Of a DNA stretch of 64,000 nucleotides, positions 1,887 to 17,062 are shown piece by piece. Source of the DNA: Macrostomum hystrix (Eukaryota; Animalia; Platyhelminthes). The notes beneath the pieces are model-generated. The model was not told where the DNA came from and made no database searches. It saw only the letters and a program-made list of their open reading frames with translations. The stretch covers positions 1,798,001 through 1,862,000 of the forward strand of contig CATNEN010000014.1 of NCBI GenBank assembly GCA_950097015.1. The letters are read 5' to 3'. Position 1 is the stretch's first letter. Each line of letters opens with the position of its first letter. Made by a program: the position numbers and the translations under genes.

Positions 1887-4162
1887 TTGATGCCCCGACA
1901 GCCCTGAAGGACTGGAATTAGCCGGTCCCTCCTGTCAGTTTAAGTCTGCCTGCCCGTGTGTTTATTTGCTTTGCTCTGTTGCTCTCTCCGCGTCTCTGCG
2001 CTTGGCTGTTGGCCACTCTTCAGACAGTGTAGATGATGGTTCAAATGAAATACATTCAGTTAATCAGCACAGCTAAGACGCGGAGAATCGCTTTCAGCGT
2101 CAATAGCAAACCCATCGGTGGCAAGCTAGAACACCGCCTAGATTCAGCTAGAGAGTTTATTGTTCTTATCGATTGCCATTGCGCACCTCGTCATTCTCGC
2201 ACCGGCACATTCACTAATCCATTCACGCACTAACTAGCTCACTCACTCTGTACTCTGTTGGTGAATGCTGCTTTTCTATCTTCTCTTTCAGTGTCTGTTG
2301 TTTGTTGTCGTGTAGCCTAGCCGACCCCTTCCTGTTGGAATCGTATTAGACTCGTGGCATCACTTCTGCTATAATTGTGCTCATGATTATCCGTTTGGGA
2401 CGCCGGCTGTCTCAATGGAGGGGCCCAACTTTGTCGCTTTGAGGAAATAATGGTCTATGGTCCAAACTGTGGATATTGCTCCTATCACAATAACTGCCAT
2501 CGAAGTGGGCCCCTTTTTGAATAGCCTTTTTGCGCGTCTGGCTTTCATTTTTCTTAATTATTGTTTTATTATTCAATGGGTGAATGTTGCTCATATCGGG
2601 CTGCTGCTGCTGCTGCTGCTGCCGCACCGGCAGTGCCTTGTGGGCGGTTAGCTCAATGCCGCATGCTGGCCCAGGGCGCAGGGATTTTCACCTGTGCAAT
2701 TGAAGCTCTGCCGCCTTCATGCCAGCCACTCCCAGCAGTAGCACCGGCTTGTCCAAGTAACCAATACCTGTCTATATATCTATTTATTGCTTACCTCTCG
2801 GCTGCCTTGCATCGAGTTACTCCGAGTTACTTATTTAACATGCCAGCTTCACACTGCCGCATGCTCATGTCCTCCTGTTTTCTCCATTATTAGACTATAA
2901 TGCCCTGCTTTAGCTATTAGATTTGAATATTTCAGTCGTTGGCTACACAACTGTTTCCTTGGTATCCACTTTCTATGCGTTTCTACTTCCCAGGTCAACC
3001 TGCGGCTCAGTTCGAGTCAGCATCTTGCTAACCGATTGATTGATTGATTTATTTACCTATAACTCGATTCACTAATCGGCTCTCTGCTTTTAGTGCTTGC
3101 TTTTTCTGTTTGTTTTTAATTCAGCTTCAGTTGTTTCCTTTCGTTATTTTCTATCATCCAGCTAGCTCGCTGTTTATTTAACAATAAATTCGGATATTTA
3201 TTTATTTCCTTGTCCCTTGCACTTTATTCATGCACGATTAACCCCCTCATCACCTTCGAAGTGTGGTTGCTGTAATTCAGTCATCAGTCTGATTATATAT
3301 TATCTGCATATACATATAATCACCTGGCTGCTTCTCAGCCTTCTACACACGTGTGTCCGGCATATTATATTTTCCGCATATTAATCCGTGGATACCGAAA
3401 TAATAACTTTACCGTGACTGCCTTAAATTTGTATCTTTTACTACAATGCAGATAGGTTTTATGCTCATGCTGAAATCCTGAAAATCACTAGAAGCACTTT
3501 ATAACTCTAAAAATGATGCCCGTCAGAATGTCAAAAGGCAAGTACAAGTGTATTTTTAAACTCTACTCAGTATATGCAATAAAACATAAAAATTAGATTT
3601 TAACCTCTAATTTACGTCGGAAGAGATAGCACAGTAGAAACATTCCCATTAAGGGCTAGATAAAGCCTCATCAGTCACGACGCGTGTGTGTCTTTAAGAG
3701 TCTGAAGCGTTAAACTTAAGCTATGATCTGCAATTGGTTTCGAAGATACAAAAAATTCAAACAAACTAATAATGCTTAACTTATTCGCATAGGGCCGGAT
3801 TCTCTGTGATGCATCAAGTGTTTTATATACGTTTAGGTTTGTATTTAAGAGGTTTAAATTGTTTTTTTATTCAAAATCATTATAGCATTTTTAATTTCGA
3901 CGTTTTTAGCAATATAAATCTGTAAATCTGACGTGTTAATTTCCCGATTGACATTCACATTCACATTCACATTCAAACAAGAGTATTGTAACTTAAAAAA
4001 TAACCATTCAATTACAGCGAAACTTACAAGATCTTCTGATGCAACTAAGATAACGTTCCAAAATAAATATAATTTATTTTTGTCAATGCATAAAAGAATT
4101 ACACAGCTTTGAAGTTTGTTCCTATCTCCGCAGTGTATATTCTTGTACTTTCAAAAAGTAAC

Positions 4163-7100
4163 TTCTACTGCATCAATCGCAATGAAAATTTACAAAACCT
4201 CTGATGCAATCGAGTTGATTGGATGTGTAAAATTTCAGACTGATTCATGAAAGCGTCTGCGGGTTATTCAATTTTAAAGTGTGTTTCGTATCTCCGTAGT
4301 GTATTTTTGGGAGCCAGCTTGACATTCGCAGGCAGACACTTCTACTGCATCAATCGCAATGAAAATTTACAAAACCTCTGATGCAATCGAGTTGATTGGA
4401 TGTGTAAAATTTCAGGCTGATTCATGAAAGCGTCTGCGGGTTATTCAATGTTAAAGTGTGTTCGTATCTCCGTAGTGTATTTTTGGGAGCCAGCTTGACA
4501 TTCGCGGGCAGACACTTCTACTGCATCAATCGCAATGAAAATTTACAAAACCTCTGATGCAATCGAGTTGATTGGATGTGTAAAATTTCAGGCTGATTCA
4601 TGAAAGCGTCTGCGGGTTATTCAATGTTAAAGTGTGTTTCGTATCTCCGTTGTGTATTTTTGGGAGCCAGCTTGACATTCGCAGGCAGACACTTCTACTG
4701 CATCGATCGCAATGAAAATTTACAAAACCTCTGATGCAATCGAGTTGATTGGATGTGTAAAATTTCAGACTGATTCATGAAAGCGTCTGCGGGTTATTCA
4801 ATGTTAAAGTGTGTTTCGTATCTCGTAGTGTATTTTTGGGAGCCAGCTTGACATTCGCGGGCAGACACTTCTACTGCCTCAATCGCAATGCAAATTTACA
4901 AAACCTCTGATGCAATCGAGTTGATTGGATGTGTAAAATTTCAGACTGATTCATGAAAGCGTCTGCGGGTTATTCAATGTTAAAGTGTGTTTCGTATCTC
5001 CGTAGTGTATTTTTGGGAGCCAGCTTGACATTCGCAGGCAGACACTTCTACTGCATCAATCGCAATGAAAATTTACAAAACCTCTGATGCAATCGAGTTG
5101 ATTGGATGTGTAAAATTTCAGGCTGATTCATGAAAGCGTCTGCGGGTTATTCAATGTTAAAGTGTGTTCGTATCTCCGTAGTGTATTTTTGGGAGCCAGC
5201 TTGACATTCGCAGGCAGACACTTCTACTGCATCAATCGCAATGAAAATTTACAAAACCTCTGATGCAATCGAGTTGATTGGATGTGTAAAATTTCAGACT
5301 GATTCATGAAAGCGTCTGCGGGTTATTCAATGTTAAAGTGTGTTTCGTATCTCCGTAGTGTATTTTTGGGAGCCAGCTTGACATTCGCAGGCAGACACTT
5401 CTACTGCATCGATCGCAATGAAAATTTACAAAACCTCTGATGCAATCGAGTTGATTGGATGTGTAAAATTTCAGACTGATTCATGAAAGCGTCTGCGGGT
5501 TATTCAATGTTAAAGTGTGTTTCGTATCTCCGTAGTGTATTTTTGGGAGCCAGCTTGACATTCGCAGGCAGACACTTCTACTGCATCAATCGCAATGAAA
5601 ATTTACAAAACCTCTGATGCAATCGAGTTGATTGGATGTGTAAAATTTCAGGCTGATTCATGAAAGCGTCTGCGGGTTATTCAATGTTAAAGTGTGTTCG
5701 TATCTCCGTAGTGTATTTTTGGGAGCCAGCTTGACATTCGCGGGCAGACACTTCTACTGCATCAATCGCAATGAAAATTTACAAAACCTCTGATGCAATC
5801 GAGTTGATTGGATGTGTAAAATTTCAGGCTGATTCATGAAAGCGTCTGCGGGTTATTCAATGTTAAAGTGTGTTTCGTATCTCCGTTGTGTATTTTTGGG
5901 AGCCAGCTTGACATTCGCAGGCAGACACTTCTACTGCATCGATCGCAATGAAAATTTACAAAACCTCTGATGCAATCGAGTTGATTGGATGTGTAAAATT
6001 TCAGACTGATTCATGAAAGCGTCTGCGGGTTATTCAATGTTAAAGTGTGTTTCGTATCTCGTAGTGTATTTTTGGGAGCCAGCTTGACATTCGCGGGCAG
6101 ACACTTCTACTGCCTCAATCGCAATGCAAATTTACAAAACCTCTGATGCAATCGAGTTGATTGGATGTGTAAAATTTCAGACTGATTCATGAAAGCGTCT
6201 GCGGGTTATTCAATGTTAAAGTGTGTTTCGTATCTCCGTAGTGTATTTTTGGGAGCCAGCTTGACATTCGCAGGCAGACACTTCTACTGCATCAATCGCA
6301 ATGAAAATTTACAAAACCTCTGATGCAATCGAGTTGATTGGATGTGTAAAATTTCAGGCTGATTCATGAAAGCGTCTGCGGGTTATTCAATGTTAAAGTG
6401 TGTTCGTATCTCCGTAGTGTATTTTTGGGAGCCAGCTTGACATTCGCAGGCAGACACTTCTACTGCATCAATCGCAATGAAAATTTACAAAACCTCTGAT
6501 GCAATCGAGTTGATTGGATGTGTAAAATTTCAGACTGATTCATGAAAGCGTCTGCGGGTTATTCAATGTTAAAGTGTGTTTCGTATCTCCGTAGTGTATT
6601 TTTGGGAGCCAGCTTGACATTCGCAGGCAGACACTTCTACTGCATCGATCGCAATGAAAATTTACAAAACCTCTGATGCAATCGAGTTGATTGGATGTGT
6701 AAAATTTCAGACTGATTCATGAAAGCGTCTGCGGGTTATTCAATGTTAAAGTGTGTTTCGTATCTCCGTAGTGTATTTTTGGGAGCCAGCTTGACATTCG
6801 CGGGCAGACACTTCTACTGCCTCAATCGCAATGCAAATTTACAAAACCTCTGATGCAATCGAGTTGATTGGATGTGTAAAATTTCAGACTGATTCATGAA
6901 AGCGTCTGCGGGTTATTCAATGTTAAAGTGTGTTTCGTATCTCCGTAGTGTATTTTTGGGAGCCAGCTTGACATTCGCAGGCAGACACTTCTACTGCATC
7001 AATCGCAATGAAAATTTACAAAACCTCTGATGCAATCGAGTTGATTGGATGTGTAAAATTTCAGGCTGATTCATGAAAGCGTCTGCGGGTTATTCAATGT

Positions 7101-7319
7101 TAAAGTGTGTTCGTATCTCCGTAGTGTATTTTTGGGAGCCAGCTTGACATTCGCGGGCAGACACTTCTACTGCATCAATCGCAATGAAAATTTACAAAAC
7201 CTCTGATGCAATCGAGTTGATTGGATGTGTAAAATTTCAGGCTGATTCATGAAAGCGTCTGCGGGTTATTCAATGTTAAAGTGTGTTTCGTATCTCCGTT
7301 GTGTATTTTTGGGAGCCAG
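4163..7319 (+). repeat. Left-arm tandem array of a 176-177-bp unit (~18 copies)
   Basis: The unit TTCTACTGCATCAATCGCAATGAAAATTTAC...GCAGACAC starts at 4163, 4340, 4516 ... 7165. Confidence 0.97.
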
Positions 7320-7509
7320 TGCAGCTTGACATCAGCTCGCAATGAATTCAAGGCAATTGATCTTCGCGGGCATATAAATCAGCCTGTGTAGTTTTTTTAC
7401 AGTAAAAGAGGGGCTGTGTGATTTAATGAGAATTTTTTAGTGTTGAGTTGTTTAAGTGTCTTATTGTAGTATTTTTGAACGAATAAATCAGTTTTCGCCC
7501 TGCTGAAGT

Positions 7510-8573
7510 TTCCCAACCGACAATTCTTGGCCAGATGACCTGGCTAGTTGCACGCGTAGCAACGCCTTGGACCAACAGTCATCGCTGCTGTGCTCGGTGG
7601 CGGTTGCTGCATCCTTCCGACGCGACTAGGACACTCACGCGCTAGGTGGCCGACGTCTCCGCACTGAAAGCAAGCACCATGCTGCCTCTGCTGTTGCTCT
7701 GCTAGACGACTAGGGGTCGCGGCGTACGCGCAGGCCCCCCTGTCTCCTAGCAACCCGGGCCCCGGGCCGCGCGGACGCGCAGACCCAGCAGGCGACGGTG
7801 CAGCAGACTGTCGAGGAGGCGGCGTCTGGCTCAGCCGCTTCAGTTGGTCTTCCAGCTCACGGATCCGCTGCTGAAGCGCTCCAAAACCTTTTGAACTGGC
7901 GGCTCTGGTGTCCACGGCAGCCACACCTGATGTCGTCTTCCTGGAGGTCTGGTCCGAGCCTGACGTCTTGGCGGCTAGAGTAGCTGCCTCCTTTCGTCGA
8001 ACGCAACGCACAGCCTCAGCGAGAGTAGCAGGCTGTTGAAGGATCACGTACTCCTTGACGCTCTCAGTAGCCTTAATGCCCTTCTTGAATCTGTCCCTTG
8101 CAAAACTGTTGACAATCTCAGCGGGCAGCTCGTCTTCAGGGTAGGCATTCCTCGCCAGCTCCAGCAGTGCATCGGCGTATGCCTCGTAGGTCTCGCCCTC
8201 CTTCTGCACTCGTGACTCCAGCTCCATCCGGTAATCTTCAGTCGTGCGGTGCTGCTGAAACCTTTCCAACAGAGCGTCCGTAAACTCCTGATATTCCAGA
8301 TCCTCACCCAGCTTGATTCTCCACCGCTGCAAATGCTGTATTCAAATCCAAGAAGCTAAGCAGGTGCGGCCTTCGAGCGGCCTCCGCAATCTGCGCAGCA
8401 TCACAATAAGCGTTGAACTTCTGCAACCACAGGCGAAAGTTGCCTCCACTAGAATACTTCGGCGGCTTCGCTGGCCTCTGGACATTCTGCGCTGCATTTA
8501 TCTCCTGCTGCAAGGTCCGACGCACCGAAGCAGTCATCAGCTCCACGAGGCGATTCACTCCTTCGTCTCCCAT
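7510..8573 (-). pseudogene. gag: Disrupted retrotransposon gag with two CCHC zinc knuckles
   Basis: ATG at 8573 begins MGDEG...FRLWLQKFNAYC. A frameshift near 8320 leads into the 7544-8332 frame (LESRVQKEGETYEAYADALLELARNAYP). Knuckle 1 is CFQCGDVGHLAREC. Knuckle 2, CYACN*PGHLAKNC, is broken by a TAG at 7544-7546. Confidence 0.85.
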
Positions 8574-8718
8574 GACGACAACAAAATCCTCGAATCACAA
8601 GATAAAAAATCTCACGGCAACAACAAAGCACTGACAAAAGTCCTAGAAAACACCCCTCCTGAACAGAATCCCTAAGCTAATTAACACATGGGGTCGAGGA
8701 TCCTAACAGGCACGAACT

Positions 8719-8736
8719 ATCCTGGTCACGACACCA
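8719..8736 (-). promoter_or_regulatory. Primer-binding site, tRNA-His type
   Basis: Minus strand TGGTGTCGTGACCAGGAT is complementary at 17/18 positions to the invertebrate tRNA-His 3' end ATCCTGGTCACGGCA-CCA (tRNA sequence recalled, not searched). Confidence 0.75.
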
Positions 8737-8737
8737 A

Positions 8738-9459
8738 TGTTGTGTCCCGAGACGGGCCAGCCGGCTTCGCCTCTCGCTCAGGACGAGCAGGGAGGTTCAG
8801 CACTTCCGTCCTACTATGTGTCGGCCTACTGTCGCACTAGACGCACAGGCAGTAAGCCGGCAACCAAGGTCGCAACGAATGCACAGGCCCTGGCGACAAA
8901 GTCCTAGTGACTGAACCCGAAAAGACAGAGGCAGACGACACTTACGTAGGCTTGCAGTGCGGGTTTGCGCTCGGGAGAGCTGGCTGAGTTGATGTATTTT
9001 GTCTGGTAGGCGGTGGTTGGGGTGCTCAACAAAACAAAACAGTCACGTCCGAGGGGGACGAGCGCGCGCACGCCAATAAATAAGACCTGCTCACCCAGGG
9101 TGAGCAGGGTAATACCCGATCACGGCTAAGCTGCAGGGTAGAGAGAGAAAGTAAGAGACAGTAAGAGAGAGAACCAGTCGCAGCCTCGCCAATCACGCAG
9201 GGTCAATAAGACAACTGGGCGAGCCGCGAACCAATGAGAGGGCAGGAACGGAAGATGACAATAACCGGGGGTACCCAACGTCTTAGCTCAACCAATCAGA
9301 CGCCAGGGGTGAGAGAAATTGATAGGCAGGCAGGCGCAGAGCAAGAAAGGGGCAGGGGGGGGGGCGACTCAAAGTGCAACGCGACTGTGAAAGTGCACCG
9401 AAAAATACAGTACATAGAAACTATTAAATACAGTACATAGAAACTATTAAATCACAACA
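8738..9459 (-). repeat. 5' LTR of the truncated retroelement (722 bp)
   Basis: Terminal inverted 7-mers TGTTGTG (8738-8744) and CACAACA (9453-9459). The PBS lies 1 nt inside. Internal 23-bp tandem duplication at 9403-9448. Confidence 0.8.
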
Positions 9460-10452
9460 CATTGAATAACCCGCAGACGCTTTTCATGAATCAGTCTGAA
9501 ATTTTACACATCCAATCAACTCGATTGCATCAGAGGTTTTGTAAATTTTCATTGCGATTGAGGCAGTAGAAGTGTCTGCCTGCGAATGTCAAGCTGGCTC
9601 CCAAAAATACACTACGGAGATACGAAACACACTTTAACATTGAATAACCCGCAGACGCTTTCATGAATCAGTCTGAAATTTTACACATCCAATCAACTCG
9701 ATTGCATCAGAGGTTTTGTAAATTTTCATTGCGATCGATGCAGTAGAAGTGTCTGCCTGCGAATGTCAAGCTGGCTCCCAAAAATACACTACGGAGATAC
9801 GAACACACTTTAACATTGAATAACCCGCAGACGCTTTCATGAATCAGTCTGAAATTTTACACATCCAATCAACTCGATTGCATCAGAGGTTTTGTAAATT
9901 TTCATTGCGATTGATGCAGTAGAAGTGTCTGCCTGCGAATGTCAAGCTGGCTCCCAAAAATACACTACGGAGATACGAACACACTTTAACATTGAATAAC
10001 CCGCAGACGCTTTCATGAATCAGTCTGAAATTTTACACATCCAATCAACTCGATTGCATCAGAGGTTTTGTAAATTTTCATTGCGATTGATGCAGTAGAA
10101 GTGTCTGCCTGCGAATGTCAAGCTGGCTCCCAAAAATACACTACGGAGATACGAACACACTTTAACATTGAATAACCCGCAGACGCTTTCATGAATCAGC
10201 CTGAAATTTTACACATCCAATCAACTCGATTGCATCAGAGGTTTTGTAAATTTTCATTGCGATTGATGCAGTAGAAGTGTCTGCCTGCGAATGTCAAGCT
10301 GGCTCCCAAAAATACACTACGGAGATACGAACACACTTTAACATTGAATAACCCGCAGACGCTTTCATGAATCAGCCTGAAATTTTACACATCCAATCAA
10401 CTCGATTGCATCAGAGGTTTTGTAAATTTTCACTGCGATTGATGCAGTAGAA
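9460..10452 (-). repeat. Right-arm inverted array of the same 176-177-bp unit (~5.6 copies)
   Basis: Reverse complement of the left-arm unit (CATTGAATAACCCGCAGACGC...GATGCAGTAGAA). Begins mid-unit exactly at the LTR end (9459/9460). Confidence 0.97.
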
Positions 10453-11609
10453 GTTACTTTTTGAAAGTACAAGAATATACACTGCGGAGATAGGAACAAA
10501 CTTCAAAGCAGAGTAATTCTTTTATGCATTGACAAAAATAAATTATATTTATTTTGGAACGTTATCTTAATTGCATCAGAAGATCTTGTAAGTTTCGCTG
10601 TAATTGAGTGGTTATTTTTTAAGTTACAATACTCTTGTTTGAATGTGAATGTGAATGTGAATGTCAATCGGGAAATTAATACGTGTAAATCTGCGTAAAA
10701 AGCAGTGTAAAAATTTACATATATAACTGGTTTACTTTTTTATTGGAACAAGCGTTGTTTTAGCAATTGAGTTCGGGCTATGGAGGCGACTCATTGTGAG
10801 CACTTTAAAATTATAAGGAATCGTTTGTTTCATTCTAGTATCGATCGCTATAATCGATATAATATTGATCGATTCGATTAAAGCATCACTCGGTAAATAA
10901 ATGTAAAATGCCTTCATCATCAAAATCGCTTATAATGAACAGTGTATATATATTTTAATAAAAACTAATCATGACCAATTAGATGGACCAAATTGTATCC
11001 CCGTGTAGATTGATCATGATAGACCACACTGCCACATATATTATTAATATTATAATATATATTATTTATTATATATTATATTATTATATATATATTAATA
11101 TATTTTATTAGAAATATAACTTGACTGGACTTGGTCACATGGACTCACGCCTCATGGTTGTAATACCTGGACAGACCCTAAACAGAAGCATTTCTTTCAC
11201 ATTTAAAATAAAAAATAATAAATGAAGTCTTATCTTAATCATTGTTAAGTTTGCTAGTAGAAAACATCAAAATATATTATGTATTTTTATTGCACATTTT
11301 TAATTTAAATTTATGCAAATTAATGATCGTATTCCTAAATCCTATTTATATGCCATGTGGCATGCCATTGTTTCTAAATATTCAGAGTATAAATTATATT
11401 AGTCTTGAATGGCATATAGGTAGTGTCCTAGGGCTAATTAATCCTACTGCTGTAACCAAAGTTGTCGTAGTGCTTATATAGTTTATTCAAGTACTGTTTT
11501 TATGTCAATCTTATGAATGTCTTTAATTATTCGCTTTAATTATTGCACTTCTTATTTCAATTCAATTTGGTAACATTTATGTATTTTAATCTGGTAGTGT
11601 TATATGTGC

Positions 11610-11786
11610 TGTAAGGTGTGCGGTGATTCATTCTCGCATCGCGTTGTAAGTTGGCTTCGTAAATTGTGCAATGCGATGTACATTCTCTGGTGTACATAGC
11701 CAAATATAAAGTCGCTCACTTGAGGCTTTAGTCACCTCGTGTTTTCTCGGTTCTCGCGCAAGTCTCGCCTTCTGACCTAGTTTACA
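11610..11786 (+). repeat. 5' LTR (177 bp)
   Basis: TGTAAGG...TTTACA. Differs from the 3' LTR at one position (CGCGTTGT vs CGCGTCGT). Confidence 0.95.
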
Positions 11787-11787
11787 T

Positions 11788-11800
11788 TGGTGGCAGCGGT
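11788..11800 (+). promoter_or_regulatory. Primer-binding site, tRNA-Leu type
   Basis: TGGTGGCAGCGGT is complementary to the tRNA-Leu 3' end ACCGCTGCCA-CCA and lies 1 nt after the LTR. Confidence 0.8.
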
Positions 11801-11827
11801 CTCTATCTCAAGTCGGCCCACTCACTC

Positions 11828-12664
11828 ATGGCACACGCCAATGCACTTTTGCCACCCAAGTTTTCCGGCTCAGACGATGCCGACATCAACATGTGGCTGC
11901 AAATGTTTGAGGACTTCGCCACGGATTCCGAGTGGGACGACAAAAAGATGGCATCGAAAATCCGGCTGCTCTTATCTGGCGAGGCGCTCGTCTTCGTGTG
12001 GGACCTGCCGGAGGAGAAGAAGAAGAGCTTCGCGACCATCAAGGACGAGCTGGTCAAGTTCTACCGTGGCAAGGAGAACTCGTTCTGCGCCATGTCGGAG
12101 TTCGAGAGCCGGAAGCGACGCCAAGGAGAGTCGCTGAGGGAGCTGTGCCACGCTCTCAAGCTCCTGTACCGGAAGGCACGCCCTGACCACGATCAGACGG
12201 TGAGAGACTGCGAAGTGCGACACCGACTGCTGGCTCTGCTGTCGAAGGAGATTCGCGAAGCGTTGCTGAAAGATGCTGACTGCAGCAGCAGCAGCCCGGA
12301 GCAGCTGGCGGACCGCGCCACGGCTCTTGAGAGCATCGGCGGCAGAGGCGCCTCTGCAAGCATCGCGGTAACATCGGTGAGCAGCCAAGTGGTGGACCGG
12401 CTGGAGCAGATGCAGGAGCAGCTGGCGGACCTGGCTGCGACGGTCGCCACCATCAGCAGCCGTGGACAGCGCGGTGCGCGAGGAAGAGGAGCTCGGGGGA
12501 GAGGCAGCGGTCGCGGGAAATGCTTCAACTGCGCTCAGCCCGGCCATTTCGCGGCCCAGTGCCCCAGGCAGGCCGCGCCAGCCGTGCCGCCCGTGTGCAG
12601 CCGCTGCTCAGGCAAAGGGCACCGGGCCGAGGTCTGCCCGACCCCGGCTTCGGGAAACTTCTGA
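11828..12664 (+). CDS. gag: Retrotransposon Gag with two CCHC zinc knuckles
   Basis: 278-aa ORF with a capsid-like segment (FESRKRRQGESLRELCHALKLL), an RG-rich stretch, and knuckles CFNCAQPGHFAAQC and CSRCSGKGHRAEVC. Confidence 0.93.
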   Translation: MAHANALLPPKFSGSDDADINMWLQMFEDFATDSEWDDKKMASKIRLLLSGEALVFVWDLPEEKKKSFATIKDELVKFYRGKENSFCAMSEFESRKRRQGESLRELCHALKLLYRKARPDHDQTVRDCEVRHRLLALLSKEIREALLKDADCSSSSPEQLADRATALESIGGRGASASIAVTSVSSQVVDRLEQMQEQLADLAATVATISSRGQRGARGRGARGRGSGRGKCFNCAQPGHFAAQCPRQAAPAVPPVCSRCSGKGHRAEVCPTPASGNF

Positions 12665-12710
12665 GGACTGGTGACCGTGGGCCATCACCAGCCCTGCCTA
12701 GCAAGGCCCA
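12652..12710 (+). promoter_or_regulatory. -1 programmed ribosomal frameshift signal (G GGA AAC + predicted H-type pseudoknot)
   Basis: Slippery heptamer at 12652-12658 in the gag frame, with pol open in the -1 frame. Stem 1 is CTGGTGA/TCACCAG (12668-74 / 12685-91). Loop TGGGCC (12678-83) is complementary to GGCCCA (12705-10). Confidence 0.8.
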
Positions 12711-15700
12711 AACCGCTTCGCTCTTCCTGCCCGGCAGCATCGCAGGCCGGCCCTGCAGGTGGCTGTTCGACACGGGCGCGCAGGTGACGCTCGTATCAGC
12801 TGCCCAGTTTCGAGCTCTGGGAGTCGCAGCTCAGCTTCATCCGCCTCTCAGCACTCCGGTCGGGATCGATGGTCGACGCTTGGAGTCTCCGGCATGCGCA
12901 ACGCTGGCCATTCAGCTGGGCGGACTGCCGCCCATGGAGCACCCGGTGACGGTGGTCGCCGACATTCAGCCGGAATGCGTGCTCGGCATGGACGCCATCA
13001 GCAAGATGTGCTCAACCTTCAGCGTGGATCTCATGTCGTCTTCTGTCCTGCTGGGGTCAACCAGGATCCCAGTCCTGCCAGACAGGAACTCCATGCCGGC
13101 CTGCCGGGTGGTGCCCACCGCCGTGGTCGCCAGAGTCGCCAGCACCGTGTCCATCCCAGCCCGCAGCCGCGTCATCATCCCGGTCAAAGTGGCATCGTAC
13201 GTTGAGCAGGGTCTGTTCGAGCCCAGCTCTGACTTCGTCGACAAGACCGGCCTGCTGCCGAACCGGGCTCTGGTGGTCTCCAGCGCGGACGGCAACCTGC
13301 CGGTGGGAGTCTGCAACCTGAGCGCCGACCCGGTGGTGCTCTACCAGAATCAGGCCATCGGCAACTTCGACGCTGCCGAGCCTCACGGGCCCGACGGTGA
13401 AGCTGCGGAGGAGGCCGGCTTCAACATCAACCCGGAGCTGAGCCGGTCGCAGCGCGAGGTCATCGAAGCCCTGCTGAACCAGCATGAGCTGGCATTCGCC
13501 AGTCACGAGTTCGACCTGGGGACCACGCACCTACTGCAGCACGAGATCAACCTGGAACCCGGCAGCCGCCCCATCAAGCACAGGCAGCGGACAGTGCCAC
13601 TGAACTTCAGACAGCAGGTGGACGACAAGATCAGCGAGATGCTGCGTCACGGGATCATCGAACCGTCATGCAGTCCGTGGGCGAGCAATCTGCTGGTGGT
13701 GCGCAAGAAAAACAACGAAATCCGCATCTGCACCGACTGGAGGGCCCTCAACTCGTGCACCGTGAAGGACGCCTACCCGCTGCCGCCGCTGTCTGTCGCT
13801 CTGGACGCGCTCACTGGCAGCAGCTGGTTCAGCACGCTCGATCTCCGCCAAGGGTTCCTGCAGGTCGAGCTGCGCGAGCAGGACCGGGAGAAGACCGCCT
13901 TCTACACCACGCAAGGCCTGATGCAGTACAGGAAGCTCGGCTTCGGCCTCTGCAACGCCCCGGCGACCTTCCAGCGCCTGATGGACTTGACGATGGCGGG
14001 CCTGAACTGGACGGAGGTGCTCACCTACATGGACGACCTGATCCTGTTCAGCACGACGTTCGAGCAGCACGCGCAGACGCTGAAGGAAGTCCTGGGAAGG
14101 CTGCAGTCGGCGGGCCTCAAGCTGAACAAGCGCAAGAGCTGCTTCTGCTTCCAGGAGGTCGAGTACCTGGGGCACAAGATTTCGGCCGATGGGATCCAGC
14201 CAACCCAGGACAAGGTCAGCGCCATCCAGTCCATCCCGACGCCCGAGTGCGCTGAGGACGTTCGCCGGCTCGTCGGCATGCTGGGCTTCTACCGGCGGTT
14301 CGTGCCGCACTTCGCCAGCATTGCGAATCCGCTGCACCAGGCGACTCAGAAAAGTCGGCAGTTTCGGTGGACGGCAGAGTGCGAGGCAGCCCTGCGCGAG
14401 CTGAAGTCGGCGCTGTCGGCACCCCCAGTGCTGAAGCTGCCGGATTTCTCCAAGGGATTCCGGCTGTGCTGCGACAGCAGCGGCGTGGCCATCGCAGGAG
14501 TCCTCAGCCAGCTCCACGAAGGCGTCGAATGCCCGGTCGCCTACGCGTCGAGAGTCCTGAATAAGGCAGAGCGCAATTACTCGACCACCCACAGAGAGCT
14601 TCTGGCGGTCGTGTGGGCCATGAAGCACTTCCGGAACTACTTGGCGTCCGCCGGCGAAATTCTCGTCTTCTCCGACCACAAGCCGCTGCAAGGGCTGCTG
14701 AACACCAAGGAACCCGAAGGTCGCCTGGCCAGGTGGATCACGCTCCTGCAGGAGATCAATTTCAAGCTGCTCTTCAGGCCTGGTCGCGAGAACGTGGTGG
14801 CGGACGCGCTGAGCCGGGCGGCGGCGACCCGGCTGACACCCGCCTGGTCGGACGAGGAAATCAGCGCGGCGCAGGCCGATGACCCGGTGCTGGCAGCGGC
14901 TCGCCAGGTGCTCATCGGACGGAGGCCCCGGCGAGGCAAGGCCGCAGACGACGCAGAGAGCCTGGTGAGGTCGGAGAACCTGGAGCTTGGCGAGGACGGC
15001 GTCATCAGGAGAAGCGGCTTCCCCGTCATTCCGCTGCAGCTTCGCCAGGAGCTTCTGAGGCAGCTGCACGACGACCCGGCAAGCGGGCACCTCGGACTGG
15101 ACAGGACGCTAGCGAGGGTCGTCAACAGAGCCTGGTGGCCCGGCCTGAAGGACGACGTCCAGCACTGGGTGAGCAGCTGCGAGGTGTGCCAGCGTCGCAA
15201 GGTACCGCACCAGCACCAAAGGGCGCCGCTGCAGGACAACACCGTGCCGTCAACTCCCTGGGAGATGGTGCAGGTGGACATCAAAGGACCGCTGCCGGCC
15301 ACAGAGACCGGTCAGAAGTACATCATCTGCTTCACCGACGTGTTCTCCAAGTGGGTCGAAGCGGCCCCAGCGACCAACATCGAGACTCGCACGGTCGCTG
15401 AAGCCATGCTGCGCAGCGTCGTCCTCCGCCACGGGTCGCCCGAGGTCATCCACTCCGATCAAGGTCGCCAGTTCGAAAGCGACGTCTTCCAGGAGCTGTG
15501 CCGGCTGCTCGACATTCGAAAGACCAGGACGACACCATTCCACCCCAGCGGCAATCCGGTGGTCGAGCGATTCAACCGGACTCTGGGCGACATGCTGGCG
15601 GCCTACTGCATGGAGCAGCAGGACAGGTGGGCGGCTTTCCTGCCGTACGTCATCTGGGCGTACAACTCGTCGGTCCACAGCACCACCAAGCGGTCACCGT

Positions 15701-16272
15701 ACGCGGTGCTGCACGGCCGCGACCCCCGGATCCCAGCCGAGCTCAGCCTGCCCGCCGCCGGTGAGAGGCCGGTCGTCACGGACGCGCTGGCGGACGCCCG
15801 CGCCGGCCTGCAGCTAGTGCGGCAGCGCCTGCAGTCGACGCAGCGGTCGCGGAAGCAGCAGTACGACAAGCGCCAGCACTTCACTCCGTTCCAAGTCGGC
15901 CAGCTGGTGATGCTCAACAACCCGGCGGTGCAGAAGGGCCAGTCCAAGGCGCTCCGCCGGCGGTGGTTGGGGCCGTACCGAGTGCTCGAAAAGCTGGGCC
16001 CAGTCACCTACCGGATCTCCAAGCCCACCGGGCGGAGGCGGAGCTCGGTGGTGCACCACGACCGGCTGAAGGCGTTCGTGGCGAGGCGGCCGCAACCCGC
16101 TGTCCCGCAGCCCGCCGCCGACCCACCCGCTGCAGAGAGCGACCGGCCGCCCAGTCCGGCTGCCGACCCGCGTGAGACCTGGCAGGAGCTGCTGGACGAA
16201 CCGGCGCCTGCTGGGCCCAGACGCTCGAATCGGACTCGGAGGCAGCCAGATTTTTTTGTCGCGCAATTTTGA
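12652..16272 (+). CDS. pol: Pol polyprotein (protease, reverse transcriptase, RNase H, integrase), expressed by frameshift from gag
   Basis: LFDTGA (protease); GLCNAPATFQR and YMDDL (RT); CDSS...ELLAVVWA...SDHKPL...NVVADALSR (RNase H); H..H..CEVC, VDIKGP, SDQGRQF, VERFN and GPYRV (integrase). The ORF-track start at 12520 overlaps gag and is probably not the real start. Confidence 0.96.
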   Translation, partial: GKLLRTGDRGPSPALPSKAQTASLFLPGSIAGRPCRWLFDTGAQVTLVSAAQFRALGVAAQLHPPLSTPVGIDGRRLESPACATLAIQLGGLPPMEHPVTVVADIQPECVLGMDAISKMCSTFSVDLMSSSVLLGSTRIPVLPDRNSMPACRVVPTAVVARVASTVSIPARSRVIIPVKVASYVEQGLFEPSSDFVDKTGLLPNRALVVSSADGNLPVGVCNLSADPVVLYQNQAIGNFDAAEPHGPDGEAAEEAGFNINPELSRSQREVIEALLNQHELAFASHEFDLGTTHLLQHEINLEPGSRPIKHRQRTVPLNFRQQVDDKISEMLRHGIIEPSCSPWASNLLVVRKKNNEIRICTDWRALNSCTVKDAYPLPPLSVALDALTGSSWFSTLDLRQGFLQVELREQDREKTAFYTTQGLMQYRKLGFGLCNAPATFQRLMDLTMAGLNWTEVLTYMDDLILFSTTFEQHAQTLKEVLGRLQSAGLKLNKRKSCFCFQEVEYLGHKISADGIQPTQDKVSAIQSIPTPECAEDVRRLVGMLGFYRRFVPHFASIANPLHQATQKSRQFRWTAECEAALRELKSALSAPPVLKLPDFSKGFRLCCDSSGVAIAGVLSQLHEGVECPVAYASRVLNKAERNYSTTHRELLAVVWAMKHFRNYLASAGEILVFSDHKPLQGLLNTKEPEGRLARWITLLQEINFKLLFRPGRENVVADALSRAAATRLTPAWSDEEISAAQADDPVLAAARQVLIGRRPRRGKAADDAESLVRSENLELGEDGVIRRSGFPVIPLQLRQELLRQLHDDPASGHLGLDRTLARVVNRAWWPGLKDDVQHWVSSCEVCQRRKVPHQHQRAPLQDNTVPSTPWEMVQVDIKGPLPATETGQKYIICFTDVFSKWVEAAPATNIETRTVAEAMLRSVVLRHGSPEVIHSDQGRQFESDVFQELCRLLDIRKTRTTPFHPSGNPVVERFNRTLGDMLAAYCMEQQDRWAAFLPYVIWAYNSSVHSTTKRSPYAVLHGRDPRIPAELSLPAAGERPVVTDALADARAGLQLVRQRLQSTQRSRKQQYDKRQHFTPFQVGQLVMLNNPAVQKGQSKALRRRWLGPYRVLEKLGPVTYRISKPTGRRRSSVVHHDRLKAFVARRPQPAVPQPAADPPAAESDRPPSPAADPRETWQELLDEPAPAGPRRSNRTRRQPDFFVAQF

Positions 16273-16371
16273 GCTGCTAACTATTTTTTTGTTCTTATAA
16301 AGCTTGTAGTGCATCATTTTAAGCTGCCTAAAATATTTGTTTATTTTTTTTGTTTTTAATGTCCTCAATTT

Positions 16372-16384
16372 AGGGATGGAGTGA
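16372..16384 (+). promoter_or_regulatory. Polypurine tract
   Basis: AGGGATGGAGTGA immediately precedes the 3' LTR. Confidence 0.75.
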
Positions 16385-16561
16385 TGTAAGGTGTGCGGTG
16401 ATTCATTCTCGCATCGCGTCGTAAGTTGGCTTCGTAAATTGTGCAATGCGATGTACATTCTCTGGTGTACATAGCCAAATATAAAGTCGCTCACTTGAGG
16501 CTTTAGTCACCTCGTGTTTTCTCGGTTCTCGCGCAAGTCTCGCCTTCTGACCTAGTTTACA
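16385..16561 (+). repeat. 3' LTR (177 bp)
   Basis: Direct repeat of 11610-11786, followed by TSD GTGC. Confidence 0.95.
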
Positions 16562-17062
16562 GTGCAATATGGCCAATATTAATCTTTCTATATTCACTTC
16601 TATTTATAACCTTACCGTATTATTTCTATAAGTACTATTTATTAGTCTTTATCCGTCTTTATCAGTCTTTATCACTCTTCAATTATTCTTTATTCAATCT
16701 TCAATTCAATCATCAGTTCAATCTTCAAGTCCATCTTGGGCTTTACCAGTGGATCTAGATTTATAGCTCTCCCTTACTCAGTTTACTTCTCTTTCGCAAT
16801 GTCTCTTTCAAATAACTTCGACATGAACACTTCAAGATTCAAGCTTTCTTTATTCTGAACTCCGTCAAATGAGTATTATTTCTTCTCTCTTCCGCTCGTG
16901 TGTATTTATACTCAAACTTCTCCTCCTCCTCACCTCCGCGACTTCATTAAAACCTTTTATTTTCAGTGCGATTAAACAAATTGTATGTAAAGTTAAACAA
17001 AATACTAAATTTTCGCGGGAAATGGTTTCTAGAAATTAATAAAAATTAGGCTTATCTCAGTC

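Follow-up and report, generated by a model that had tools for sequence, protein, structure and literature searches.

Transposons whose long inverted termini are internally repetitive have been described in both flies and beetles. FB and FB-NOF of Drosophila melanogaster combine such termini with a 9-bp target-site duplication, and most of their copies have no coding middle. Galileo of Drosophila buzzatii, which belongs to the P superfamily, makes 7-bp duplications, and those of Merlin measure 8-9 bp. The long terminal inverted repeats of Galileo contain internal tandem repeats with extra transposase-binding sites (quoted in PMC4079207).

The closest described systems are Tetris and Rehavkus. 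Tetris, a non-autonomous foldback of Drosophila virilis, has long inverted termini made of a flanking domain and a variable number of ~220-bp repeats, and its repeat has a short stretch in common with the flanking domain that is interpreted as a duplication of the terminus (PMC4079207). Its middle domain is of variable composition and without coding capacity, no transposase was found for it, and its duplications are 8-10 bp long (PMC4079207). Free-standing satellite arrays have been shown for this element (PMC4079207; Dias et al. 2014). In Tribolium, the inverted termini of Rehavkus combine terminal repeats with tandem repeats in subterminal position, and the latter expand into satellite DNA (PMC12581902). 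The number of repeats varies strongly among copies and species, and the arms can be more than 11 kb long and seed satellite arrays (PMC12581902; PMC6446971). Rehavkus is a Repbase group defined by a transposase with a PHD finger; like many MULE groups it makes 9-bp duplications, and its host range in a 2019 survey comprised Arthropoda and Annelida (PMC6446971). A literature search for foldback transposons in flatworms returned nothing relevant. Here we compare with these systems an element from the flatworm Macrostomum hystrix, located in a 64-kb stretch of DNA that was analysed as a whole (the window).

Inverted ends and a target-site duplication

The element spans positions 3931-10684 (6,754 bp) and lies between the two copies of an exact 9-bp duplication. 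Its outermost features are as follows.

3922-3930, unstranded: left target-site duplication GTAAATCTG, an exact copy of the right one
3931-4160, plus strand: left terminal (outer) domain, 230 bp, with the first letters ACGTGTTAATTTCCC and including (ATTCAC)x4.8
10455-10684, minus strand: right terminal (outer) domain, 230 bp, a match to the left domain
10685-10693, unstranded: right target-site duplication GTAAATCTG, an exact copy of the left one

The two terminal domains are mirror images that stop at the same nucleotide, with 225 of 230 positions identical (97.8%) between 3931-4160 and the reverse complement of 10455-10684. Across the window, the terminal 22-mer is found at the two element ends only (0 expected by chance), and GTAAATCTG occurs on neither strand outside its two flanking copies. 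The sequences beyond the left and the right duplication are unrelated to each other. No second copy of the element was detected within the window by repeat comparison or by a search for the terminal 22-mer, nor was a second foldback or other inverted repeat (11041-11110 masked). An earlier note on this DNA had interpreted two apparent satellite blocks as a single element of foldback architecture, with modular inverted termini and an exact 9-bp duplication. The inverted terminal domains, the arrays that they enclose and the two flanking copies of GTAAATCTG bear this out. The identity of ~98% that it gave for the outer domains also stands; their length is 230 bp rather than the 232 bp proposed.

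These ends bear on whether transposition took place at all. A local inverted duplication of an ordinary satellite, through fold-back replication or repair or through ectopic exchange between two arrays, would produce opposed arrays with no transposition. This would suit a region that is very prone to tandem repeats (>30 minisatellite arrays in the window), as well as the unequal arms and rearranged centre described below. However, such a duplication gives neither a target-site duplication nor sharp, identical outer ends, an exact 9-mer is expected at both ends by chance about 4 times in a million (4 to the power -9), and the flanks outside the 9-bp duplication are unrelated. We consider this explanation very improbable.

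We give equally little credence to an assembly artefact, in which the assembler, or long reads that were chimeric, introduced a false fold-back or inversion into what is really one satellite array. Palindromes and tandem arrays do invite assembly errors, but an artefact would not yield termini that both stop at the same nucleotide and are flanked by a unique, exact 9-bp direct repeat, arms that differ by five outer-domain substitutions and by monomer variants, or a non-palindromic centre of 2.1 kb. Furthermore, both junction stretches are partly contained in contigs of this organism from several separate samples, with 29-66% of sampled words present, these being word shares from sequencing runs that do not resolve the junctions themselves. 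The array lengths, not the architecture, could be affected by misassembly.

In RNA runs of two other organisms, 6-10% of the words sampled from the two junction stretches were present, a tentative hint at the broader scenario considered below. The two stretches have only element sequence in common.

Unequal arms made of a 176/177-bp unit

Inside the terminal domains lie two arrays of one satellite unit.

4161-7319, plus strand: left array, 17.9 copies of a 176/177-bp unit (TRF, 97-98% matches)
9459-10454, minus strand: right array, 5.6 copies of the left-array unit, inverted (TRF, monomer table)

The inverted arms, with an array in each, make up 68% of the element and are strongly unequal in length, at 3,389 bp on the left and 1,226 bp on the right, a disparity that the earlier note had passed over. 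The right arm can be aligned over its whole length with the outermost 1,227 bp of the left arm at 98.1% identity, and the order of monomer variants in the right array mirrors part of the left array. The inner arms thus consist of one unit in opposite orientation, as had been claimed, with the same period of 176/177 bp and 17.9 versus 5.6 copies. The length of ~1.2 kb proposed for a cruciform stem is also upheld, and equals that of the shorter, right arm. Within the left array, a block of seven monomers (4338-5573) is present again at 5574-6809, the two copies (1,236 bp) differing by a single mismatch. Growth of the left arm by duplication of this seven-unit block, which the earlier note did not mention, is very recent.

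Several other properties of the unit were assessed. An Rfam scan of 3800-10800 with E values up to 1 found no ribozyme or known RNA in the unit; the sole match in this interval was a chance-level snoRNA in the centre. The unit folds no better than its shuffled versions, and it contains no hammerhead ribozyme motif, on which grounds a ribozyme-bearing tandem repeat (retrozyme or Sm-alpha-like) was rejected. An exact-product look-up for the 44-aa open reading frame of the unit found no product on record. Exact-pattern scans gave no match to the unit and terminus in metagenome contigs and none to the motif shared between them in viral contigs, and a literature search for four segments of unit or terminus sequence came back empty.

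The element shares with FB and FB-NOF its long inverted termini, their internal repetition and a duplication of 9 bp. The arm repeats of FB are shorter and more heterogeneous than the units found here. Compared by description, Tetris shares with our element arms built of terminus-derived repeats, the lack of a transposase and a similar duplication length, but its unit is longer (~220 bp versus 176/177 bp) and its host is a different one. The parallel with Tetris that the earlier note had drawn is accurate in light of the published description (PMC4079207). Likeness to Rehavkus lies in the 9-bp duplication and in inverted termini with subterminal tandem repeats expanding into satellite, whereas the transposase with a PHD finger that defines Rehavkus has no counterpart in the present element.

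Homology of the terminus and the satellite unit

The outer domain is colinear with ~1.2 units along its whole length (score 33, z about 6), and none of 300 shuffles reached this score (mean 15.7, sd 3.0, maximum 26). For the terminal 45 nt alone the similarity to the unit is modest, with a score reached by 5 of 500 shuffles. Judged by sequence, the terminus and the satellite unit are homologous, and the terminal domain reads as a degenerate copy of ~1.2 units. Degenerate pieces of the unit had previously been reported in the outer domain, and the satellite had been tied to the terminus: both 17-mers quoted at the time are present, the domain can be aligned as a whole, and the colinear alignment scoring above all shuffles substantiates the homology. 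In Tetris, by comparison, 37 bp are common to repeat and flank, versus the colinearity of the whole 230-bp outer domain here.

The terminus and the unit also have the motif TTGACATTCRC in common. Its 24 matches all lie within the element, where 0.08 would be expected, although the 22 copies in units are not independent of one another. Each terminus and each unit has one, in constant orientation relative to the nearer end. Borrowing the model of Galileo, in which internal tandem repeats carry extra transposase-binding sites, we suggest that TTGACATTCRC would be the best candidate for such a site in this element.

A retrotransposon fragment in the centre

Between the arrays lie 2,139 bp that are mostly a retrotransposon fragment, overlooked in the earlier note.

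7320-7490, unstranded: inner spacer, opening with ~35 bp of degenerate unit sequence with internal deletion, AT-rich thereafter
7490-8573, minus strand: broken gag of an LTR retrotransposon, ATG at 8573 (ORFs, read-through translation)
8720-8736, minus strand: putative primer-binding-site-like TGG... stretch, one base past the LTR end
8738-9461, minus strand: inferred 5' LTR of the gag-bearing retrotransposon, TGTTGTG...CACAACA, with a 7-bp terminal inverted repeat

An LTR retrotransposon, broken and reduced to its 5' part, makes up this centre: it comprises an LTR, a primer-binding-like site and gag. Such a recognisable fragment sets the element apart from Tetris. The LTR was assigned from its termini and from its position ahead of the primer-binding-like site and gag, and no second LTR is present in the window. 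A tandem repeat of 23 bp lies within it at 9403-9452. The outer LTR end adjoins the right array exactly, with 3 bases common to LTR and unit, and the meeting point is an intact integration-type junction. The position of the stretch at 8720-8736 and its TGG start suggest a primer-binding site; a whole-window scan found no tRNA gene with which to compare it.

The reading frame of gag shifts within 8304-8332, the second zinc knuckle is interrupted by an in-frame stop (7544-7546), and the coding part, which neither protease nor pol follows, runs out near 7490. Domain matches were obtained to zf-CCHC (E 2.5e-6) and to Retrotrans_gag (E 0.0044, which falls short of the curated cut-off), and a search with the 262-aa gag piece found no homologues at E 0.001 or better. 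Kinship with a neighbouring gypsy element was considered and rejected, as there is no DNA match and the proteins match at the level of the zinc knuckle only. For the pol of that neighbour, an exact-product look-up found no product on record.

Similarity to the unit runs on past 7319 into the spacer. A reading of ~7356-7490 as further degenerate unit was not significant, with 48 of 500 shuffles reaching its score, and the AT-rich part of the spacer is possibly the original middle domain. The lists of open reading frames contain no transposase-like frame within the element, whose sole coding remnant is the retrotransposon gag. This absence of a transposase gene had also gone unremarked.

Classification and proposed origin

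With good confidence we read the locus as a single insertion of a cut-and-paste DNA transposon that is non-autonomous and of foldback type, and we propose the following history for it. A DDE transposase like those of Mutator, Foldback and Rehavkus, with its gene at another place in the genome, would bind the repeated terminal sites and cut the target with a 9-bp stagger. Tandem duplication of subterminal sequence would have given rise to the arrays, and their length would change through unequal exchange or replication slippage. With the arms formed first, an LTR retrotransposon would later have integrated into one right-arm unit. An internal deletion would then have taken away the 3' part of the retrotransposon along with the inner portion of the right arm and the bulk of the original middle domain, leaving arms of 3.4 and 1.2 kb. 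The retrotransposon events may have occurred either at the present locus or in a parent copy that later transposed with its cargo.

The element is probably Mutator/Rehavkus-like because of its 9-bp duplication, a length within the range of Mutator, Foldback-NOF and Rehavkus (about 9, 8-11). This placement is indirect, as it is read from the duplication length, the transposase gene being absent. For the same reason a true foldback-shaped transposon of another superfamily, such as a Merlin or hAT-like element, has to be weighed, and a 9-bp duplication fits the range of Merlin too. Membership in the P superfamily with Galileo was rejected, as the duplication here is 9 bp and not 7 bp. Galileo nevertheless exemplifies that foldback structure may evolve independently in another superfamily (PMC4079207). 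Against such an origin, 9 bp is the length given for Rehavkus and many MULE groups (PMC6446971). We regard another superfamily as unlikely and favour a Mutator/Rehavkus-like foldback. A Helitron- or Helentron-borne array is ruled out by the inverted termini, the 9-bp duplication and the presence of arrays at both ends.

Implications

The locus is a good example of a kind of element already described in flies and beetles, and is not a new kind. Foldbacks with satellite-expanding termini have been described in Tetris and Rehavkus (PMC12581902), and on its own this element brings no new principle to what Tetris and the Rehavkus elements of Tribolium already show. The undescribed foldback family and the mobile source of a satellite suggested in the earlier note go beyond what the single copy seen here can support. 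A broader scenario would have the foldback arms and the dead LTR-gag fragment form one mobile unit, with foldbacks routinely carrying retroelement cargo, their termini seeding ~170-185-bp satellites genome-wide, and a large, still-active radiation in a phylum without described elements of this type; we think this speculative and rather doubtful. What the locus does provide is a clean natural case of the route from transposon to satellite, with a terminal domain, its homogenised derivative array, a seven-unit duplication with a single mismatch and an intact target duplication all on display at one place.

Structure and boundaries of the element

The stretch at 3931-10684 is a real, single, well-bounded, non-autonomous foldback-type transposon; a truncated retrotransposon is nested within it, and its left arm has recently expanded. 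The earlier note was right to read the two satellite blocks as one foldback element with satellite arms.

Features of the element and its neighbour
3922-3930 and 10685-10693: 9-bp target-site duplication
3931-4160 and 10455-10684: outer (terminal) domains
4161-7319: left array, period 177 (also 353), 17.9 copies, 97-98% matches (Tandem Repeats Finder)
9459-10454: right array, period 176, 5.6 copies, 99% matches (Tandem Repeats Finder)
9461 to 8738, minus strand: LTR with 7-bp inverted ends TGTTGTG...CACAACA
8736-8720, minus strand: primer-binding-site-like stretch initiated by TGG, one base past the LTR
8573 (ATG) to near 7490, minus strand: gag, with zinc knuckle and weak Retrotrans_gag
11606-16564: intact-looking Ty3/gypsy LTR retrotransposon, 0.9 kb beyond the element

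The ends were read and then checked by script. The left end begins ACGTGTTAATTTCCC, and the right end, as its reverse complement, begins ACGTATTAATTTCCC. The outer domains are mirror images, as had been claimed, and measure 230 bp rather than 232 bp, with 225 of 230 positions identical. Matches to the terminal 22-mer with up to three mismatches were found in the window at the two element ends only (0 expected). Searching for inverted repeats returned 78 arm pairs linking the two array blocks, one of them spanning 355 nt (3931-4285 versus 10330-10684, 98%); the window has no inverted repeat besides the element. Immediately outside both ends lies GTAAATCTG, which does not recur on either strand of the 64 kb; by our own arithmetic, chance would place an exact 9-mer at each end of an inverted pair with a probability of about 4 in a million. 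The arrays, the inverted ends and this flanking 9-mer together bear out the original observation of the element. In the left flank (3913-3930), TAAATCTG occurs twice in tandem (ATAAATCTG, then TAAATCTG), and the target itself is therefore a short direct repeat. This leaves the 9-bp duplication unchanged and makes the site slightly repetitive.

Growth of the satellite arms

The consensus of the right array is the reverse complement of that of the left. Divided at a fixed anchor, the arrays yielded 18 monomers on the left and 6 on the right, all of which deviate from the consensus at a few positions only. Left monomers mostly alternate between 176 and 177 bp, except for the last, which is truncated to 157 bp; the right array comprises four monomers of 176 bp, a single one of 177 bp and a truncated one of 115 bp. 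Monomers 9-15 of the left array repeat monomers 2-8, and the corresponding 1,236-bp blocks (4338-5573 and 5574-6809) differ by a single base, at 5566. Given this near-identity, the left arm expanded very recently, through duplication of a 7-unit block. Three mismatches separate the final 510 bp of the left array from an internal part of the duplicated block. The right arm (1,226 bp) is 98.1% identical to the initial 1,227 bp of the left, and the two arms share monomer variants in partly mirrored order (right 2, 5 and 6 resembling left 13, 15 and 16), which is compatible with an originally symmetric element.

Many 177-bp units contain a 44-aa ATG ORF (MKASAGYS...) that extends into the next unit (4247-7030 and 9530-9664). 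Nothing indicates that it is a gene, and an exact-product look-up found no record of its product. The unit has no match in Rfam, and its folding does not surpass that of shuffled sequences.

Positions 2-211 of the outer domain are colinear with about 1.2 units, scoring 33 against 15.7 ± 3.0 (maximum 26) in 300 shuffles. Stricter scoring singled out the block holding two 17-mers that the earlier note had paired (36, the best shuffle reaching 24). Taken by itself, the terminal 45 nt shows a modest match to the unit, with a score reached by 5 of 500 shuffles, and the 11-mer TTGACATTCRC falls within this match. In the window the motif occurs 24 times (0.08 expected), always inside the element: each terminus has one copy nearby and each unit carries one, in uniform orientation relative to the nearer end. 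Since the unit copies are not independent, only the sharing of the motif by terminus and unit counts. By these alignments terminus and unit are homologous, and we read the array as the probable product of subterminal sequence duplicated in tandem. A 37-bp shared stretch led to the same inference for Tetris (PMC4079207). By analogy with Galileo (quoted in PMC4079207), and with a statement on foldback termini (PMC12581902), the shared blocks are putative transposase-binding sites.

A retrotransposon fragment in the centre

Between the arrays, 7320-9458 is GC-rich (0.51-0.63 over most of its length, the arms being at about 0.40), and no second copy of it lies in the window. A zinc knuckle is recognisable in its gag (PF00098, E 2.5e-6); the match to Retrotrans_gag is weak and falls short of Pfam's cut-off (E 0.0044). 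The frame is broken twice, by a frame change within 8304-8332 and by an in-frame stop at 7544-7546 inside the second zinc knuckle; no protease or pol lies behind the gag end. A homologue search with a 262-aa piece of this gag gave no match at E 0.001 or better. As a candidate relative, the neighbouring Ty3/gypsy element was rejected, the two being unrelated.

At its outer end the LTR meets the right array in mid-unit, with three bases common to both, and this boundary looks like an integration junction. From the left array towards the gag end, the first ~35 bp are a degenerate, internally deleted unit, and the remainder is not significantly unit-like. A retrotransposon would have inserted itself within a right-arm unit, and a later deletion would have taken the 3' part of the retrotransposon together with the inner right arm and most of the former middle domain. 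Since none of its ORFs resembles a transposase, the element is non-autonomous.

Occurrence in other samples

For both junction stretches (3600-4400 and 10300-11100), contigs from several samples of a single organism contained 29-66% of the words sampled. RNA-type runs of two other organisms contained 6-10% for both. Since the two stretches have only element sequence in common, the simplest reading of these word shares is that part of the element may be present and transcribed in related species. One DNA-type run of the same organism as the contigs contained 23% of the left stretch, in flank words only, and none of the right, which could represent presence/absence variation. Reduced-representation libraries are an equally possible source of the word shares in these RNA-type and DNA-type runs. 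Exact-pattern scans gave no match, either for the unit and terminus in metagenome contigs or for the shared motif in viral contigs, and a literature search with pieces of the unit and terminus sequence found none.

Relation to known foldback systems and genomic setting

Tetris of Drosophila virilis has a flanking domain with derived tandem repeats, a non-coding middle, 8-10-bp duplications and no transposase found (PMC4079207). The architecture here, a flanking domain with terminus-derived tandem repeats, matches that of Tetris. It likewise agrees with the Rehavkus foldback transposons of Tribolium, whose arms can be longer than 11 kb and can give rise to satellite arrays of up to 80 kb (PMC12581902). 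A 9-bp duplication is the value listed for Rehavkus and several MULE groups (PMC6446971). A candidate placement in Mutator/Foldback/Rehavkus fits this length, and nothing contradicts it. A Helitron-borne satellite was ruled out by the tested features of the element. Galileo/P elements make 7-bp duplications, and that identity was ruled out by the 9 bp found here.

The element is embedded in AT-rich DNA, some 2.4 kb downstream of an OGT (O-GlcNAc transferase) exon (787-1521; PF13844, E 6.6e-39), directly upstream of which is a 36/71-bp tandem repeat (309-727). Beyond the element, past an AT-rich, low-complexity stretch (11041-11110), the Ty3/gypsy retrotransposon has 184-bp LTRs (11606-11789 and 16381-16564; 3 mismatches, 98.4% identical) flanked on both sides by GTGC, an apparent 4-bp duplication. 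It encodes a zinc-knuckle gag (11828-12664) and a pol that runs uninterrupted for 1,250 aa (12520-16272) and has protease, RT, RNase H and integrase; an exact-product look-up found no record of this pol. The retrotransposon looks young and is possibly active. From 17000 to 64000 there are more than 30 unrelated minisatellite arrays (units of 16-47 bp, up to 2.2 kb) with short unique stretches between them.

The element is thus a further example of an already known architecture. It sits in a region with an unusual tendency to form tandem repeats, and the same tendency may be driving the growth of the foldback arms.
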